A stretch of DNA of 64,000 nt, taken from NCBI GenBank assembly GCA_009103225.1, contig RHPI01002069.1, forward strand, positions 1,408,744-1,472,743. Direction: 5' to 3'. Under the pieces are notes generated by a model. That model did not search any database, had not been told where the DNA came from, and worked only from the letters and a program-made list of their open reading frames with translations. A program made the translations under genes and the position numbers. The DNA is from Chlorokybus atmophyticus. Lineage: Eukaryota; Plantae; Mesostigma and Chlorokybus algae. Below are positions 21,990 to 31,182 of this stretch, piece by piece (position 1 is the first letter of the stretch; every line of letters begins with the position of its first letter).

Positions 21990-24548
21990 ATGAAGCTGGA
22001 CGTGAACGCCCTGCGCTACCTCAGCGGCGAGGACTGGCGAGTGCTCACAGCAGTGGAGCTGGGCATGCGCAACCATCAGGCAAGACACTTTGCGCGCTCA
22101 ATTTCCTGCGAACTTCACCTGTATGTCGTTGAAAACACCCTATTGCCAACAACTATTTCCAGCGTTTCTCCATAACTACATGGCTGGTCACTTACAGAAA
22201 AATGACGCTAAGAATACGTTTCAAACACTGTGCGGTTTCATTTTGCTCTTGATTTGGAAGCAGGCTTGCATTGCATGCACTCCTGGTCCTCTGTAACGTA
22301 CCAAAGTTGGCGCTACTTATATGTATGCGTTTAAGGCAGAGCATTGCAGCACTGTTTAGCAAGGAAAGCAGCATTACGAACATGTCAACACAAGTGCTTT
22401 GCCCACGCTGTTGATAGAAGCCCGGTGTCGTGGTTATCTACATTCCAATCGTTGTAGTAGAGTTTTGTACACATTGTCGTGGTTGTTAAGTATCCCAGAG
22501 AGGTTAAAATGCAACAGTTTCGTTGATAACCTTATTATGCTACGAATGGTGCAACAGATTGTGCCAGCGGAGCTTATTGAGCGCATTGCACGGTTGCGAG
22601 GCGGCGGCGCTTTCAAGCGACTATCCTCCCTCCTTCGTCACAAACTCGTGCATCACGACTCTTCACGTGGATACGATGGATACAGGCATGTACATCATGC
22701 TCTTATTTCAGTTGCCTCAACGTGCAGCAGGTACGTGAAGACAAAGCTTACGTGTGTTTGTTCCTTAACAGGTTGACAAACTTGGGTTATGACTTTCTGG
22801 CGCTGCACGCAATGACAAAAGCGGGTACACTCACAGGCATTGGCCGCCAGCTGGGAGTCGGTAAAGAGTCAGGTAACCACACTCAGTGATGCAATTCCCA
22901 CCATGTTCGCTGTTGCTTTGACACTAAGGTGCATGTTGTCATTGTAGACATCTTTGAGGCTGCGGGTGCGGACGGGGAGAGCCTTGTGATGAAGTTTCAC
23001 CGGTTGGGACGCACGTCTTTCCGCGCTGTTCGACACAAAAGAGATTATCTGCGCCACAGGTAGCACTTGCTGTAGCACTCATCCGTATTTCGGTGTGCAA
23101 CGCGGTTTGCATACTCATGGTTGCTGTGCTCAACAGGACTTCCACCAACTGGTTGTACCTCTCGCGACTGGCCGCCGCCCGGGAGGCGGCCTTCATGCGA
23201 GCCCTCAAACAACATGGGTTTCCTGTTCCGGAGGTGAAAACAGCGATATGTTTGTGGCTAAGCATTGCTTGTTTGCTAGCTGGGTGCGGAGGTGTGACAC
23301 TGTGTGTTTGTTGTTGCGTCAGGCTGTCGACGCCAACCGACATTGCGTGCTTATGACTCTGGTGCCAGGCTACCCGCTCGTCCAGGCAAGCGCTCACATT
23401 TGCACACAGATTTGTTTTGCACTCCTCTGCGCCAGTCTTGTCGTGGTACAACAGGCGTAAGTATCCCTCGTATGTGCGTAGTACTTGTACACATGGTTGT
23501 TTTCTTGTTCAGGTGAAGCAGGTGGCGAATCCGGCTGAGGTGTATGAGCAGCTGATGGGTTGGATAGTGCGGCTGGCGCAGCACGGTCTGATCCACTGCG
23601 ACTTCAACGAGTTCAACGTGATGGTCGACGACGAGGAGCGCCTCACCCTCATCGACTTCCCGCAGATGGTCTCAACATCCCACCGCAACGCCCGCATGTA
23701 CTTTGATCGCGATGTCGCGTGCGTGGCAAAGTTCTTCCGCAAACGCTTCGGATATCCGTCTCCTGTTGATGAGGAGGAGGAGGAGGACAGTGATGTCGAG
23801 CTCGCGGGCCTGCCGTCCTTCGATGATATCCTTGCCTACAGATCAAGCGCTGATTTCCATGAAGATGATATCGCCACTGCGCTTGATGTCGAGCTTGAAG
23901 CTTCGGGCTTCACAAAGGAGCAAAGACAGGCTCTGGAGTCTTATAGTGCGGATGCTGGGGAGCCATCTGATGGGGAAGAAGGCGGTGTGGGTGTTGGAGT
24001 GGAGGGTGAAAGTGTGGTTGAAGATGAGGGAGTTGTTGGTGGCGAGCACAGACTTGAAGGTGGTACTGAACAGGTTGGTGACGATGCACAAGCTGCCTCC
24101 AGGTCTGGAGATGACACGAGCACATCTGAAAGGTGCGCAAAGGCAATGTGGACTGACCTTTGTTTGCTACACGCACAGTTGTTTGCTGACCAGTTGTTGG
24201 GTATGTATGAGCACAACAACTACACATGATTTGGGAAGTTTTCAAGTGCATTTGTCATCAGGGACGATGATGGTACTGATGGCGAGGGTGACGGAGGTGA
24301 AGAGGGTCAACAAGACGGCACGCAACAGGTAAGTTTGCATGTAGTTTGTGTATGCTGCCATTCCGTCAACACAACCGCAGCTGAGTTTATACAACGTGTG
24401 CTGGCAGGCGCAAAGGCAATTTAACACGCAGCAGAGACGGAAAGCGCTCGGCGAGGCGATGAAGAAGGCTTCCCGCAACGCCTACAAGAATAAATCCGGC
24501 TCAAGACGAAGGGGTACTGCCAGTCAAGGCATGGCAGGCTTGTTCTAG
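21990..24548 (+). CDS. RIO2: RIO2 atypical Ser/Thr kinase (40S ribosome biogenesis)
   Basis: MKLDVNALRYLSGEDWRVLTAVELGMRNH, YDGYRLTNLGYD, GVGKESDIF, KFHRLGRTSFR, WLYLSRLAA, GLIHCDFNEFN, IDFPQMVSTSH, YFDRDV, then an acidic tail. Confidence 0.95.
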
Positions 24549-25751
24549 CTGGTTGTTGTGTTGTGTTGTATGGGCAGGCTTGCCTACACTCACTATTGGA
24601 AGACAAGTTGGTGTACGGATTGGGGTGGTTGCAGGTCAACTTGATTGGGTTGACGCATATGTGGCCATCACATCAACTTTAATTTCGTGAAGTACACTTG
24701 TCCTAGCAGTGACTATCGCGAACAGCACAAGCAGTATTGCTACATGCAACACTGCTTGTGCACGCACTACCACTGATAGGTTCTCAGCAGTAAGCGCTGT
24801 GCATCATCACAAAGCGAATTGGAGATTGAGTTATGATGGGCAAGGTGATGTTCCATAAGCACACTTGCGCACAGGGTGTGTTCCCGTGCTTTGAATGAAT
24901 TGTATTACATGGAAGCGCATGGGTTCGTGCGCTAGCGGGTTTTGTGTTAACACTGTGCTGGGCATGCTGTGGTGGGTATGAATGTGCTTATGCTCATGTG
25001 CTGTGCTGTGCGTGTGGTGTGGTGTGGTGTGCTGCTGATGTCACTAGGGGCCCTTCGGTTTCACCTGATGAATCAACAGCACTTGCTGCAGTCAAATAAC
25101 ACCAAAACAGTCCAGGTAGCAGCGTACACTAGTATGATTCATGATACCTGTCCACCGTTGGATCACTGTGCGTCATCTGCGCCGTCAGCCGGTAGCACAG
25201 TTTTGGCGGGAGACGTGCTGCCGACCGGCCGCGGCTCAGAGATCGGCCGCGCGCGAGGTCATGGCTGGTTGACTGCGTCTTGCAGCACTGGTCACACAAC
25301 CGTAATACACCAGTCGAAAGCGCTTTCCCGCGCCAAATGACCGGCCATGTGCAGGTCTTACACCACGCAGCCATTCGCACACGCAAACGAGCCCAAACAG
25401 GCTGGTGTTAAGACCCGTCCGCGCTTAGCGAGGCATATTTGACGGAAAACCAGTAAAACTGCGTGGACGTCCCTACACTTGCGGCGCTTGCTAGAGTTCA
25501 GAATGTGGTTTAATAAAGCTAGGGAAACGTTCCGACGATCCTAGAGGAAAGATTACGGGTTGCCTTTGGCAGCAACAACTGTGGGCAGCAGCGTGCTCGG
25601 TGGCAGCGGCGGGAAGCTCGCCGTCGTTGTTGACGTCGTGGTCGTGGTTGTCGCCATCGCTGGTTAGCTTCCTTGAATCAGCCTTCATTGACCTTGCTCG
25701 CCACAGGCCGCATTTGCGGGTGTAGGAGCTTCTGTTACGAGAGCTTGCAGC

Positions 25752-28700
25752 ATGGCTCGCACCAAGCAGACGTCGCCGTCCGGACAGCCCCGCCGTGGTG
25801 AGCGCTTGAGCATTGCTTTGCGCTTTCGTGTGCATGGCATATTCGGCTGGGCTGTAGGCACCTCGCACCTGGACAGTAGTACTGCCGTGCCATGCAACCA
25901 TGCACTTGCCTGATCTGCTCCTTCTTTTTGAGGATGCTTCGCAAGCATGTTATCAGCACATTATAGATTGGATTCTCACAGTGCAGATGTTGAAAGAATT
26001 CTAAGCATATATCAACCATTGCGCAATTAAGGTTGTGGTTTAAAGTTCTGCTTGTGGACGTTGGCAATCTTTGCGTTGTTCGAAAGTCACAGTGGCAAGC
26101 ATGCACCCTTAGCGCTAGCAGCTGTGGAATTGAAAGTCAGGCTTCTCAGGATAGAGTATGTAGAGAGACATGATTGCTAACTGCCACCGCCATCACATCT
26201 CTCAGCGTCGCTTGCGCCACTTTCCAAGAGCATGTGCAGTCATTCACGTAATGGTGCTTGCAGCTGCTGCGGAGAAAGCGAGCAGCAGCATGCGGCAAGC
26301 AGTCGCAGATAACGAGGACGACGGCAGCGATTTTACACCTGAGTCAGAGGACAATGGTTTGTGCATCGTGTGGTCACCTGTCGATCTGTGGTGAACATTT
26401 CTGGGCGCTTATGGAACAGCAGTTCAAACATAGGTGCTTGCTCCTAGCAGGAAGTGAAGAAGTGTATGAAGAGGAAGCAAGCAGCAGTGGCAGCGAGGAG
26501 GACTGTGTTGAGGAGGAGGAAGAGCAGCCGCCCAGCAAGCGTCAGCGACGCATGAGCACTCCTCGTGGCAAAGCAGTTGCCGTGGTAAGCATGCTGCAAT
26601 GGTTGTGTTTGAATGTTAACATAGTTTTATCGACCTGTCCTCATGCTGTTTTGTTCGGCTGTTATGTATGTAGGTGACACCAGAGAAGGGCATTGTTGAA
26701 GTGAGCAGCGAGGATGAAACGCTGTCCCTTAGAGTGCAGAAAGCCAAGGCAAGGAAGAAAGTTGCCGCCAAGCAATCAACGCCCAAAGGGTAAAAAGGGT
26801 CTTCAGCACCTTCATTATATAGCAAGCCAAGTGTATCTCTATTGTATAGGCAGCCTTTGCTGTGTGGTTGTTGATGCCATGGTTTGAGCTCAACTGTTGA
26901 TAACTCAGGCGTGGTAAAGCCAGAGCCAAAAAGGAAGAGGATCCTTCTACCCAGTGCGCAGATGACAGCGACTCTGAGATTGACCCGGATAAGATAGTCA
27001 AGCGTACAGGACCACAGGAAAAATTGTAAGTTTTTGTAGAAGAAGCAATGCTGTACCTTACGGTGATGAGTACACTTTGCGTGTTGCGCACCTCAAATGC
27101 ATATCATTTCGGTGTTCTTATCATCCAGTTGTTCATATATTATCCTTGCAGGGAGCCGCCATCTGAGCTTCTGTTGCCCTTACTACCTTTCCAGAAGGTA
27201 CTTTGTTGTAACTGCTCTGCCTTTGCTTATACGGATGTGCATTAATGTGTACCCTCTCAAGTGAACTTGTTGGCATTGCCATATGCATTATGGGCAACGA
27301 GATGCGTGTCATGATTTGCCTCAAAGCTCACTCTCATGCTCTCACTTAACCGCAGGAATGGCTGGCCTGGAGCATCAAGCAAGAAACCGGTCCTCTAAAG
27401 GGAGGCATTTTGGCAGACCAGATGGGTACGCTTGAAAGTGACTTGGTTTGCTTCATGCAGTTGTGCTGATTAAGCTAGTTGCGTGCCAGTGCCAACGGGC
27501 TGATGCATGTCATGTTGTACACAGGCATGGGGAAGACAATTCAGGTATAGATATAGTTGTGCAGTGATCCACACTGGTGCTTGGTGGGCTTCACAGCTGC
27601 AATAAGTGTTACGATGATGTGTTTGCTCAGTTCATGCTGCCCCACAGGCCATATCGCTGGTTGTTACAAGCCGAGAGCTTCACAAACAGCAGGGTGTGTT
27701 CTCTTTGCCTGATGCTGCTACTGCAGTAAAATGCGAGGGAGAGGCTGTCAGCGCTGCAACAGAGTATGTGTGTTTTTTTTTGAGCACACATCAGCCAGTC
27801 GACAATGTCGCTGACGTCAGCGGGTGCTGACTGCATGGTGTGCATGCCATTTCTTGCTACTTTGCAGGATTGAGTTGCCGCGTGCAAAGGCAACACTGGT
27901 TGTGTGCCCCCTTGTAGCGGTGATCCAGGTACAACAGACACCTTTCTGTACATGATTCTCGTTGTCTTTGTCGTGTCGTGTGCTGACACAGCATGTTTTT
28001 GCTGCAGTGGCGACAAGAGATTGAGCGCTACACAGCTCCGGGTTCTGTTGCTGTTCTTGTGTACCACGGCCCCAACCGAGCTTTAAATCAAGAGAAGCTA
28101 GACAAGTACGATGTTGTCCTAACAACGTACTCAATTGTGGAGGCAGAGCACCGCAAGAACGTGCTCCCTGATAAGGTATCACACCTGTATCCTTTCGCCA
28201 AGCAATATATTCTTCACTGACATCATGAACCAGGATATCTGACTAGGTGCTTGCTTGCAGCTGGAGTGCAAATACTGTGGCAAGCGGTACCTTCCTGATC
28301 GGTTGCGAGTGCATCTGCGCTTTTTCTGCGGGCCAGATGCGCAGCGCAGTGACAAGTTGTCCAAGACAGACAAGAAGCGGCCCCGTTTTGGAAAGGGTGC
28401 CAAGGTCAAGCAGGACTCAGACGAGGTGCGACACTGTGCTTAACACCAAGTTTGTATCGTCTTTTATATGCTGCTAGCACCACTTGCTCAGGGTGGAATG
28501 TTTGTGCGTAGGACGAGCCCAAAAAGAAGCCAATGGGCAGGGGTGCGGGAAGAGGAAAAGGGAAAGCTGCAAGCAAAGGTCGTGGACGGAGCAAAGTAAA
28601 GCAGGACGATGATGAATGGGAGGGTTCCGATAACGAGGAGGAGGATGAGAAGCCTTCTACATCTGGCCGGGGAAGGGGCAGACCATCCGCTCGAGGCAGG

Positions 28701-31182
28701 GTAAGTGCTCGGTCATCACTGAGTGCCTGCGCCAAGCCAATTTTTGCCTGAGTGTTGTTAACCCTGGCAGCAAGGATAGGGAATGCAGCTAAGCTGCGGG
28801 TTGTGTTTGGCCGCTTTCAGGAGCCAGACTGGGTGGCTGAAGCACTGCAACAGGTTGATGCCCAACAACAGTGTGACACGCGGTCCCTGTCCAATTCTGC
28901 ACTGCATGGTGTTCACTGGACGCGCATCATTCTTGATGAGGTGCACTTTGCGACTTTGAAGGACTGTTGCAGTTCAGTTGTGCAATCATGCATGCATGCT
29001 AACAGACTGGATATGAACCTTGTGCTCAGGCGCACTCCATCAAGGACAGGCGTTGCAGCACAGCAAAGGCGGTGTTTGCGCTGCGGTCTAACTACAAGTG
29101 GGCTTTGAGTGGGACGCCGCTGCAGAACAGAGTCGGCGAGCTGTACTCGCTGATCCGTTACCTGCGGATAGATCCGTATTCATACTACTTCTGCAAGAAG
29201 TGCCCATGCAAGGCTTTGGACTACTCTTTCGGCAAGGATTGGCGCAAATGTGACCACTGTGGACACTCGCCTCTGCACCACTTCTGCTGGTGGAACAAGG
29301 TACGCTCACGTCAATGCAGCTATGTTGTGCATGAATGCTGACAAGATGCGTGAAAACTTGATGTGACAAGATTGTGGGTTGCAGCACATCGCCAATCCAA
29401 TCAAGAAGTGGGGTTATGTTGAGGGTGGAAAGACCGCCATGTTGACATTGAAGTACAAGGTTTTAGATCGCACCCTTCTCAGGCGGACAAAGGAGGAGTG
29501 CGCTGAAGACCTTGCCCTTCCACCGAGGACGGTAAGTAGATGCGTTACGAAGCATAGTCTCTGGCATCATATGCTGCTCATAATTGGTTGCCATTATTGT
29601 TGATTTGGGAGGTTTAGGGTTAACTCGCTCAGCCTGTGGCTTTACGGTTGTAGGCTGTCCTGCGCCGGGACACTTTTGATGAGAGGGAAGAGGACTTCTA
29701 CCAAGCCTTGTACACGCAGTCCCAGTCGCAGTTCAACACCTACGTCAACGCCGGCACTGTCGTCAACAACTATGCGCACATCTTTGACCTCTTGATCCGG
29801 CTCCGCCAGGTGCCTTCTTCTGGACCAATTCGTAACAGTTTCATGCACACAGTACGTGCGACCGACCTTGCAGCTTACTGTGTTGCAGGCTGTCAACCAT
29901 CCCTACTTGGTCATCTACTCTGCAACTGGCAAGTCGCCTACTGACTCGAGCGTTGACAACTATACAGATGTTGCAACTGAGACTCCCGACAGTTGCGGCC
30001 TTTGCCATGATGCACTCGAGGACCCAGTGGTAAGTGCTGCTCTGCCTGCCAGCTGAGCATACACAGTGGTGCCGGAAGCGTGTTGTGTTTCTCATTGCAT
30101 ATGTGTGTCAGGTCACTGCATGCAAGCACAGCTTCTGCCGTGCATGCATTCTGGAGTACGCTGCAGCTGCAGGGTCCGGCGCTGCTGCCAAGTGTCCGTC
30201 CTGCAGCAAGTCCCTCACGGTGGACCTCAATGGCAACGCAGCACCCGCACCAAAAGAGGCTTCTTCCGGCCGCTACCGGAAGTCCATCCTCAGCCGTGTC
30301 GGTGACCTCTCACGCTTCCAAAGCAGCACCAAGATTGAGGCATTGGTAAGTGCCTCATGAGCAGCTTGGTATACATTCCAAGTCAGTTGTAGTCATGCTA
30401 ACTGTACCACCTGCATGCAGCGAGAGGAAATTGTGCGCATGCGTGAGCGTGACGTAGCAGCCAAGGCCATTGTGTTCAGCCAGTTCACTTCCATGTTGGA
30501 GCTAATCCAGTATCGCCTAGAGAAGGTACTGGCTGGTTCTCCCCGCCTTGCAGGCAGCGGTAATTCCCATGCGCATGAAGGCGCTTATACTCGCTTGTTG
30601 ACGTACTATAGTGCGGCATCAAGTGCGTCAAGCTGGACGGGAGCATGACCATGGAAGCTCGTGACAAGATGATTAACGCATTCACACATGACCCCTCAGT
30701 GACCATTTTCTTGATGAGTCTCAAGGCTGGTGGCGTCGCTCTCAACTTGACAGTGGCTTCTCAGGTACAAACCCCTTGCGTATGCGTGGTTACCCATATT
30801 GTTTGCTCGTCATTTGTGTGATGCATTCTCAGCTTCGTCATCTGCAGGTGTTTCTCATGGACCCTTGGTGGAATCCAGCTGTTGAGCAGCAAGCACAGGA
30901 TCGCATCCATCGGCTTGGCCAGTACAAGCCGATTGTTGCAACCCGCTTTGTCATCAGCAACACCATTGAGGAGCGCATCCTCCGTCTTCAGGTGCATTCT
31001 GGCATTGGATTGCCGAGTTGTTGGTCAAAATGTGCCCAGCTTTAGTGTCTACGCGCACTTGCTAACATGTTGGGTGTGAACAGGACAAGAAGCAGTTGGT
31101 GTTTGATGGAACGGTTGGTGGTTCTTCTGAGGCCCTTGGAAGATTGACAGAGGCCGATTTGCGGTTCCTTTTCTCCAATTAG
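25752..31182 (+). CDS. RAD16: RAD16-like SNF2 ATPase with embedded RING finger (plant-type); predicted N-terminus [18 protein letters not shown]
   Basis: [87 protein letters not shown]...CKHSFCRAC...[31 protein letters not shown] (TAG 31180-31182). The 5' exons splice in consistent phase from ATG 25752. Confidence 0.92.

Follow-up and report, generated by a model that had tools for sequence, protein, structure and literature searches.

A histone H3-like N-terminus on the RAD16 repair ATPase of the streptophyte alga Chlorokybus, encoded by a mini first exon

The RAD16 ortholog of Chlorokybus atmophyticus starts with MARTKQT, and this H3-like N-terminus is confirmed here as real: the gene model is sound and the motif is no annotation artefact. 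The full ARTKQT is the established start of mature histone H3, and plant CENH3 proteins likewise often begin MARTK. The six-residue identity is probably, though far from certainly, a coincidental and lineage-specific elaboration of an ancient, conserved and basic N-terminal mini-exon.

The coding sequence (Table 1; positions are those of the window, i.e., the whole 64-kb stretch of DNA that was analysed) was modelled from three sources: 15 splice joints listed for two public runs (X1 and X2), a loose end of X2, and the coordinates in the record of a 3133-nt contig. These runs are labelled only 'RNA?', and their contigs are taken to be RNA because they skip at least 15 GT..AG introns. All introns of the 23-exon model are of the GT..AG type, those downstream of exon 2 are borne out by spliced RNA contigs, and the summed exon sizes equal exactly the record positions of the 3133-nt contig, the 20-nt micro-exon included; this micro-exon (exon 8) is supported by the exon sum, which fits positions 410-719 of the contig record, and also by GGAAGACAATT, the X2 loose end, placed before 27645. 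P0182 (EukProt jgi/Chlat1/2287/Chrsp17S02793) was reached in two steps, by a profile-free search with exon 15 and then by a word search that took the best full-length match as its query. The 969-aa model agrees with P0182 residue for residue, MARTKQT start included; this N-terminus is already present in the published Chlorokybus annotation.

Table 1. Features of the Chlorokybus RAD16 locus and the basis of each.
Feature	Position	Strand	Basis
Complete CDS, RAD16 ortholog	25752..31182	+	23 exons, 969 codons, stop 31180-31182
5' UTR (as far as the RNA contig reaches)	25670..25751	+	X1 depth bins; start approximate
Coding exon 1, 46 nt, 15 codons + 1 base, phase 1	25752..25797	+	sequence, gene model, P0182
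Codons A-R-T-K-Q-T (residues 1-6 of mature histone H3)	25755..25772	+	sequence; H3 ARTK as quoted in PMC7060239
Intron 1, GT..AG, 466 nt	25798..26263	+	acceptor AG at 26262-26263; no RNA contig coverage
Exon 2, (A)AAEKASSS..., phase 1	26264..26356	+	RNA contigs, gene model
Exons 6-17, SNF2-related ATPase lobe 1 (aa ~182-680)	27152..29809	+	Pfam
Micro-exon 8, 20 nt, Walker A core (G)MGKTIQ	27525..27544	+	exon sums, X2 loose end
Exons 18-19, C3HC4 RING finger (aa 714-756) between the two ATPase lobes	29889..30345	+	Pfam
Exons 20-22, Helicase_C lobe (aa ~799-913)	30421..30991	+	Pfam

In yeast, GG-NER, the global-genome form of nucleotide-excision repair, involves the Rad7-Rad16 complex, in which RAD16 is the ATPase and E3 ligase. 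RAD5/HLTF proteins are marked by a HIRAN domain and SHPRH by PHD and linker-histone domains. The Pfam search of P0182 returned PF00176 (6.7e-58), PF00271 (6e-20) and PF00097 (at aa 714-756), and none of the HIRAN, PHD and H15 domains. A Walker A GMGKT and a DEAH box are both present in the model, and the first ATPase lobe carries, according to Pfam, a C2HC zinc-finger insert and a basic/acidic loop (aa 331-446, exons 12-13), the loop at 373-446 being of low confidence in the AlphaFold2 model. Over the full length, the protein is closest to plant proteins that bear the name DNA repair protein RAD16 or rhp16. Its identity to land-plant proteins named RAD16 is 42-59% (full-length alignment), and the nearest gymnosperm relative reaches 59.5% over residues 151-969. 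Among solved structures RAD5 (6l8n) comes nearest, with a match that covers the C-terminal part only. The names of these relatives and the domain set thus assign the predicted protein to RAD16 rather than to RAD5/HLTF or SHPRH. Among the papers searched, none names Chlorokybus together with RAD16.

The start codon at 25752 lies in the context GCAGCATGG and is preceded by an in-frame TGA stop at 25689-25691. The RNA-covered 5' UTR is devoid of any ATG, and the 350 bases before the start contain a single one (at 25503), which opens a 13-codon ORF ahead of the start of the RNA contig. After A-R-T-K-Q-T, exon 1 codes for S-P-S-G-Q-P-R-R and then ends with an extra G (25797) before a GTGAG donor at 25798. 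The original prediction had joined this ATG, through a phase-1 donor, in frame to RAD16, and both the start and the reading frame of the join stand; its acceptor, placed at about 26254, has to be moved to the border of exon 2 given in Table 1. Exon 2 opens an acidic, serine-rich disordered tail. Intron 1 is the longest of the gene, the remaining introns measuring 75-158 nt, and an Rfam search for a snoRNA or other RNA gene inside it gave no match at E <= 0.1. A scan for bacterial-type promoters and terminators, of a type that does not apply to this genome, found nothing.

RNA support for exon 1 comes from X1, which has two contigs on the region. The main one, the 3133-nt mRNA contig, has its first base within exon 2 (at about 26316), and the second covers about 25670-25797 and then 26264 onward, with nothing between. 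The X1 depths of 8.1, 26.2, 0 and 10 in the bins 25500-699, 25700-899, 25900-26099 and 26100-299 fit one contig of about 53x, with about 30 + 98 nt ending at 25797 and about 36-37 nt starting at 26264, whereas an alternative acceptor AG at 26239 would give 60 nt in the last bin, which does not agree with the depth. The joint 25797^26264 is strongly inferred from these depth bins and the published model, not taken from the listed joints, and the contig flanks intron 1 with zero depth inside. It could be argued that the N-terminus is not made, i.e., that transcripts start downstream or that a later ATG is used (e.g., Met25, in exon 2), exon 1 being minor or non-coding: the main contig begins only within exon 2, the joint rests on a shallower contig (about 53x against 120x, as inferred from the bins), X2 leaves exon 1 uncovered, and contigs cannot reveal transcript starts or levels. 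This is improbable. The second contig flanks intron 1 on either side, no ATG comes before that at 25752 in the covered leader, this ATG has a good context and follows an in-frame stop, the published annotation starts at the same codon, and a phase-1 mini first exon is likewise annotated in Sphagnum, Diphasiastrum and Aquilegia. RNA is also lacking over the whole of intron 1, including 26100-26263, where any intronic start would fall (an alternative in-frame ATG lies within 26170-26263). Exon 1 is expressed as the start of the protein, as the RNA contig, the upstream in-frame stop and the published model agree.

The same architecture was found at the genomic loci of RAD16 orthologs from a moss, a lycophyte and an angiosperm. 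The first coding exon measures 46 nt in Chlorokybus, 46 nt in Sphagnum (peptide MARPRRVAAKRTVDK), 52 nt in Diphasiastrum (peptide MGRRPKRRAAANTSRGK) and 37 nt in Aquilegia (peptide MKRRSQRLRASD), and in all four it ends in phase 1 at a G/GT border. Because its length and phase in Chlorokybus equal those of Sphagnum, and because the architecture recurs in the lycophyte and the angiosperm, the mini-exon is ancestral to streptophyte RAD16. For the same reason (equal length and phase of the Chlorokybus and Sphagnum exons), an ungapped alignment anchored at the start was preferred to that of MAFFT, which set Chlorokybus SGQP-RRAAAEK against MARP-RRSAAK, implying a 9-residue N-terminal extension, and was dropped.

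This exon structure bears on the origin of the motif. A 5' piece of a histone H3 or CENH3-like gene could have been inserted upstream and recruited as a first exon, and the unusual length of intron 1 (466 nt) would agree with such a capture. The exon has, however, exactly the length and phase of its Sphagnum counterpart, its presence in a lycophyte and an angiosperm makes it ancestral to the gene, and the identity to H3 ends after residue 6. Besides, all six reading frames of the window are free of H3-fold motifs, as the original prediction had anticipated in reporting that no histone-fold exons follow the start. Exon capture from a histone gene is therefore largely refuted and deserves very little credence, and the simpler possibility that an H3 or CENH3 gene starts here is ruled out, since the window has no histone fold and the exon is spliced to RAD16.

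Across the family, N-termini were read in 349 members, among which there is no other Chlorokybus species. Full identity to H3 (ARTKQT, 6/6) is found in Chlorokybus only (1/349, and none of the 348 other members), and even ART[KR] from position 2 is restricted to it. The looser M[AS]R[TP][KR] occurs in nine of the 349: Sphagnum, five fern or fern-like sequences, a further sequence (P0137), Trebouxia (MSRTRS) and Chlorokybus. Typical starts in relatives are MARP[RK]R in moss and ferns, MSRTRS in Trebouxia, M[KR]RP.RK in gymnosperms and M[KE]LRSRR in angiosperms, while Mesostigma, the nearest sequenced relative, starts with MGDTARTTR. A degenerate DNA pattern of exon 1 gave 0 matches in the JGI metagenomes. 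The orthologs are thus without ARTKQT, which had itself been named beforehand as the sign of chance similarity; the proposed K4 methylation and the recruiting or decoying of H3K4 readers gain no support from conservation, and the balance leans to coincidence. It is not pure chance, because the same mini-exon codes for A-R-P-[KR] in moss and ferns and for S-R-T-R in Trebouxia; A1, R2 and the basic residue 4 look ancestral in this comparison, and a short basic peptide is, as far as these N-termini tell, what has been conserved. Seed plants have K, R or E as residue 2, with which the initiator Met should be kept, so conservation does not extend to a free Ala end.

Three substitutions lead from a fern-like ARPKR to ARTKQT. 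The probability of T3, Q5 and T6, given M-A-R and a basic residue 4, is about 1e-4 per lineage (an author's estimate from typical residue frequencies), which is small yet not negligible when set against the large number of lineages, gene families and windows that were inspected. Complete identity with H3 over six residues on an enzyme acting on chromatin is nevertheless unlikely under simple residue frequencies, which leaves room for selection. Beyond T6, the following 14 positions, aligned without gaps, hold only one more match to H3, and neither K9 nor K14 is there; a collinear likeness of residues 7-15 to H3 7-18 was rejected, because it has this single further ungapped identity in 14 and its gapped version is pattern matching.

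Proteins whose N-terminus mimics that of histone H3 (H3TM proteins) have been defined by an N-terminal M-Z-R-X-K (Chen et al. 2021, PMC8166343), the rules being removal of the Met ahead of a small residue Z, a groove for R2 and a cage for K4 (PMC8166343). Humans have 48 of them, enriched for chromatin proteins and with members such as VRK1, PCLAF/PAF15, BCL11A/B, SALL, FOG, TSHZ and MEF2; in the methylated state some of them are ligands of PHD or Tudor domains, and in the unmethylated state of NuRD (PMC8166343). The PHD finger of UHRF1 binds VRTK of PAF15 as it binds ARTK of H3 (PMC7060239), and yeast Rad16 has been tied to UV-induced acetylation of H3 K9/K14, via Gcn5 (PMC3116912). Residues 1-5 of Chlorokybus RAD16, M-A-R-T-K, conform to M-Z-R-X-K as defined in PMC8166343.

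A functional H3 tail mimic therefore has to be weighed, in which a free A1-R2-T3-K4-Q5-T6, left after Met removal, would be bound by binders of the H3 N-terminus. Candidates are PHD fingers (K4me0/me3), WD40 proteins of the WDR5 type or of the RbAp48/MSI1 type, and H3K4 methyltransferases or demethylases, and the outcomes proposed are recruitment of these binders to repair sites, their sequestration, or regulation of RAD16 via K4 methylation. The R-x-K-Q-x-x-P of the Chlorokybus end presumably recalls the FOG/SALL/BCL11 motif that binds RbAp48. All the sequence features of H3TM proteins are present (a small residue after Met, R2 and K4), the match to H3 goes beyond the R2 and K4 fixed by M-Z-R-X-K, the binding of PAF15 by UHRF1 and the link of yeast Rad16 to H3 acetylation both speak for such a role, and A-R-x-[KR] recurs in orthologs of moss, fern and Trebouxia. 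The physical setting is also favourable. Residues 1-152 have a pLDDT below 50 and no secondary structure in an AlphaFold2 model (50-sequence alignment), which shows no docking of the N-terminal tip onto the ATPase; on this model the hexapeptide is at the free tip of a disordered, mostly acidic tail of about 150 residues, in that sense tail-like, on a nuclear chromatin enzyme. Against it stand the lack of the motif in every other member of the 349, with Mesostigma and all land plants differing, the seed-plant starts M-K/R/E, which should keep Met, so that conservation does not concern a free-Ala H3-like end, and the single match to H3 in 14 residues past T6, without K9 and K14. A functional mimic in Chlorokybus is possible, but on this evidence rather unlikely. 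A broader version, more doubtful still, holds that the mini-exon of green-lineage RAD16 encodes a true H3-type end, [AS]-R-[TP]-[KR], which docks H3-tail binders (PHD fingers, WD40 proteins of the MSI1/RbAp48 type and H3-directed modifying enzymes) and couples excision repair to chromatin modification, Chlorokybus having its most complete form (ARTKQT) and seed plants having replaced it.

The preferred account is that of a coincidence on ancient ground. ATG 25752 would be the genuine start of Chlorokybus RAD16, a presumed GG-NER ATPase and E3 ligase, and its first coding exon an ancient phase-1 mini-exon common to streptophytes, which would tip the disordered tail with a short basic peptide. 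In the ancestor this peptide probably had the form M-[AS]-R-[TP]-[KR], and in the Chlorokybus lineage point substitutions would have turned it into H3 residues 1-6, with exon length and phase unchanged with respect to Sphagnum and with no capture of histone-gene DNA. The function for which the element has been conserved is most likely a generic basic contact made by the N-terminus, in nuclear import or in DNA or nucleosome binding, and the exact identity to H3 has most likely arisen by coincidence in this lineage, on a start that was already H3-like. With Ala as residue 2, the initiator Met should nonetheless be removable, so that the mature end may be chemically H3-like and could bind readers of the H3 N-terminus; in vitro, this predicted end would be able to serve as an H3-like terminus. 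Caution about a functional use is advised, because the motif is not conserved in any available ortholog.

If functional, this would be the first histone H3 N-terminal mimic on a repair ATPase of the SNF2 family, and also the first from a streptophyte alga of early divergence, offering a direct handle on the crosstalk of global-genome excision repair with readers and writers of the H3 tail. If a coincidence, it would be a caution that a perfect six-residue match to a histone can arise via few substitutions in a conserved basic mini-exon. Exon structure in distant relatives can also tell such an origin from the capture of a histone gene fragment.

Among known systems, the RAD16/Rhp16 subfamily shares with the Chlorokybus protein the domain order (SNF2 lobe 1, embedded C3HC4 RING, Helicase_C), the C2HC finger insert typical of the family and a mini first exon in phase 1, and the difference is confined to the N-terminal hexapeptide. 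The first six mature residues of histone H3 and CENH3 are identical to the end of Chlorokybus RAD16, whereas the Chlorokybus gene is without a histone fold and the rest of its product is a 969-aa ATPase. In ISWI remodelers, AutoN is a histone-H4-tail-like basic motif within an ATPase of the SNF2 family (PMC5305211, PMC5976439). As in Chlorokybus, a short, basic, histone-tail-like motif thus lies in the N-terminal region of an SNF2-family motor, and AutoN is a precedent for such motifs regulating the motor itself. AutoN, however, is an internal motif that resembles the basic patch of H4, is shared by the ISWI enzymes as a conserved element and has been found experimentally to be autoinhibitory, whereas the Chlorokybus motif resembles the end of H3, is terminal and lineage-specific, and does not dock onto the ATPase in the AlphaFold2 model. 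The H3TM proteins differ from the Chlorokybus protein in that their rule fixes R2 and K4 only (PAF15 has VRTK), whereas six residues match here; in that the mimic is kept among orthologs in the SALL, BCL11 and FOG families, whereas the exact motif is found here in one lineage; and in their carriers, which here is an SNF2/RING ATPase of a streptophyte alga. They are like it in being non-histone nuclear proteins with an M-Z-R-X-K end, a small residue after Met and a disordered region, and one of them, PCLAF, is also a factor of DNA replication and repair.

RAD16 opens with a phase-1 mini-exon of 12-17 codons, encoding a basic peptide, in all three of the orthologs from Sphagnum, Diphasiastrum and Aquilegia. 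Gene prediction could overlook so small a first exon, and mis-started models may account for the odd N-termini of several orthologs in the databases (the protein records P0001, P0171, P0209 and P0232).

RAD16 of Chlorokybus and neighbouring features, with the first exons of its orthologs (L001-L003, genomic loci)
Feature	Sequence	Position	Details
Upstream neighbour	window	23417-24230	+ (same strand as RAD16); RIO2-type kinase gene 3' end, by appearance
Intron 1	window	25798-26263	466 nt
Micro-exon	window	27525-27544	20 nt; codes for the Walker A core (G)MGKTIQ of the RAD16 ATPase
C2HC zinc finger + loop	window	28261-28700	exons 12-13, aa 331-446; insertion within SNF2 lobe 1
Mini-exon 1, Sphagnum	L001	1501-1546	
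Mini-exon 1, Diphasiastrum	L002	1001-1052	
Mini-exon 1, Aquilegia	L003	1001-1037	

Intron 1 of the Chlorokybus gene is three to six times the length of the other 22 introns (75-158 nt), has no Rfam family match and no RNA coverage, and possibly plays a promoter-proximal regulatory role. Upstream, some 1.4 kb of non-coding DNA separates the RAD16 leader from a neighbour that is apparently the 3' end of a gene for a RIO2-type kinase, with an acidic tail after a GLIHCDFNEFNVMV motif.

The Walker A micro-exon is backed by arithmetic on the transcript contig record, together with a loose end, GGAAGACAATT, of the RNA run X2 before window position 27645. Further downstream, the C2HC finger is conserved in the RAD16 family (with ...CRICGKKFYPEKLRVHRKYFCG in many family matches), and is followed in Chlorokybus RAD16 by a loop of about 75 residues, basic, RG-rich and acidic, which is disordered in the AF2 prediction.

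In its protein record, the Mesostigma viride ortholog Mv23041 (P0002 / P0271) starts with MGDTARTTRARARGP, where an A-R-T-T-R that lies four residues inside the N-terminus recalls the ARTKQ of Chlorokybus.
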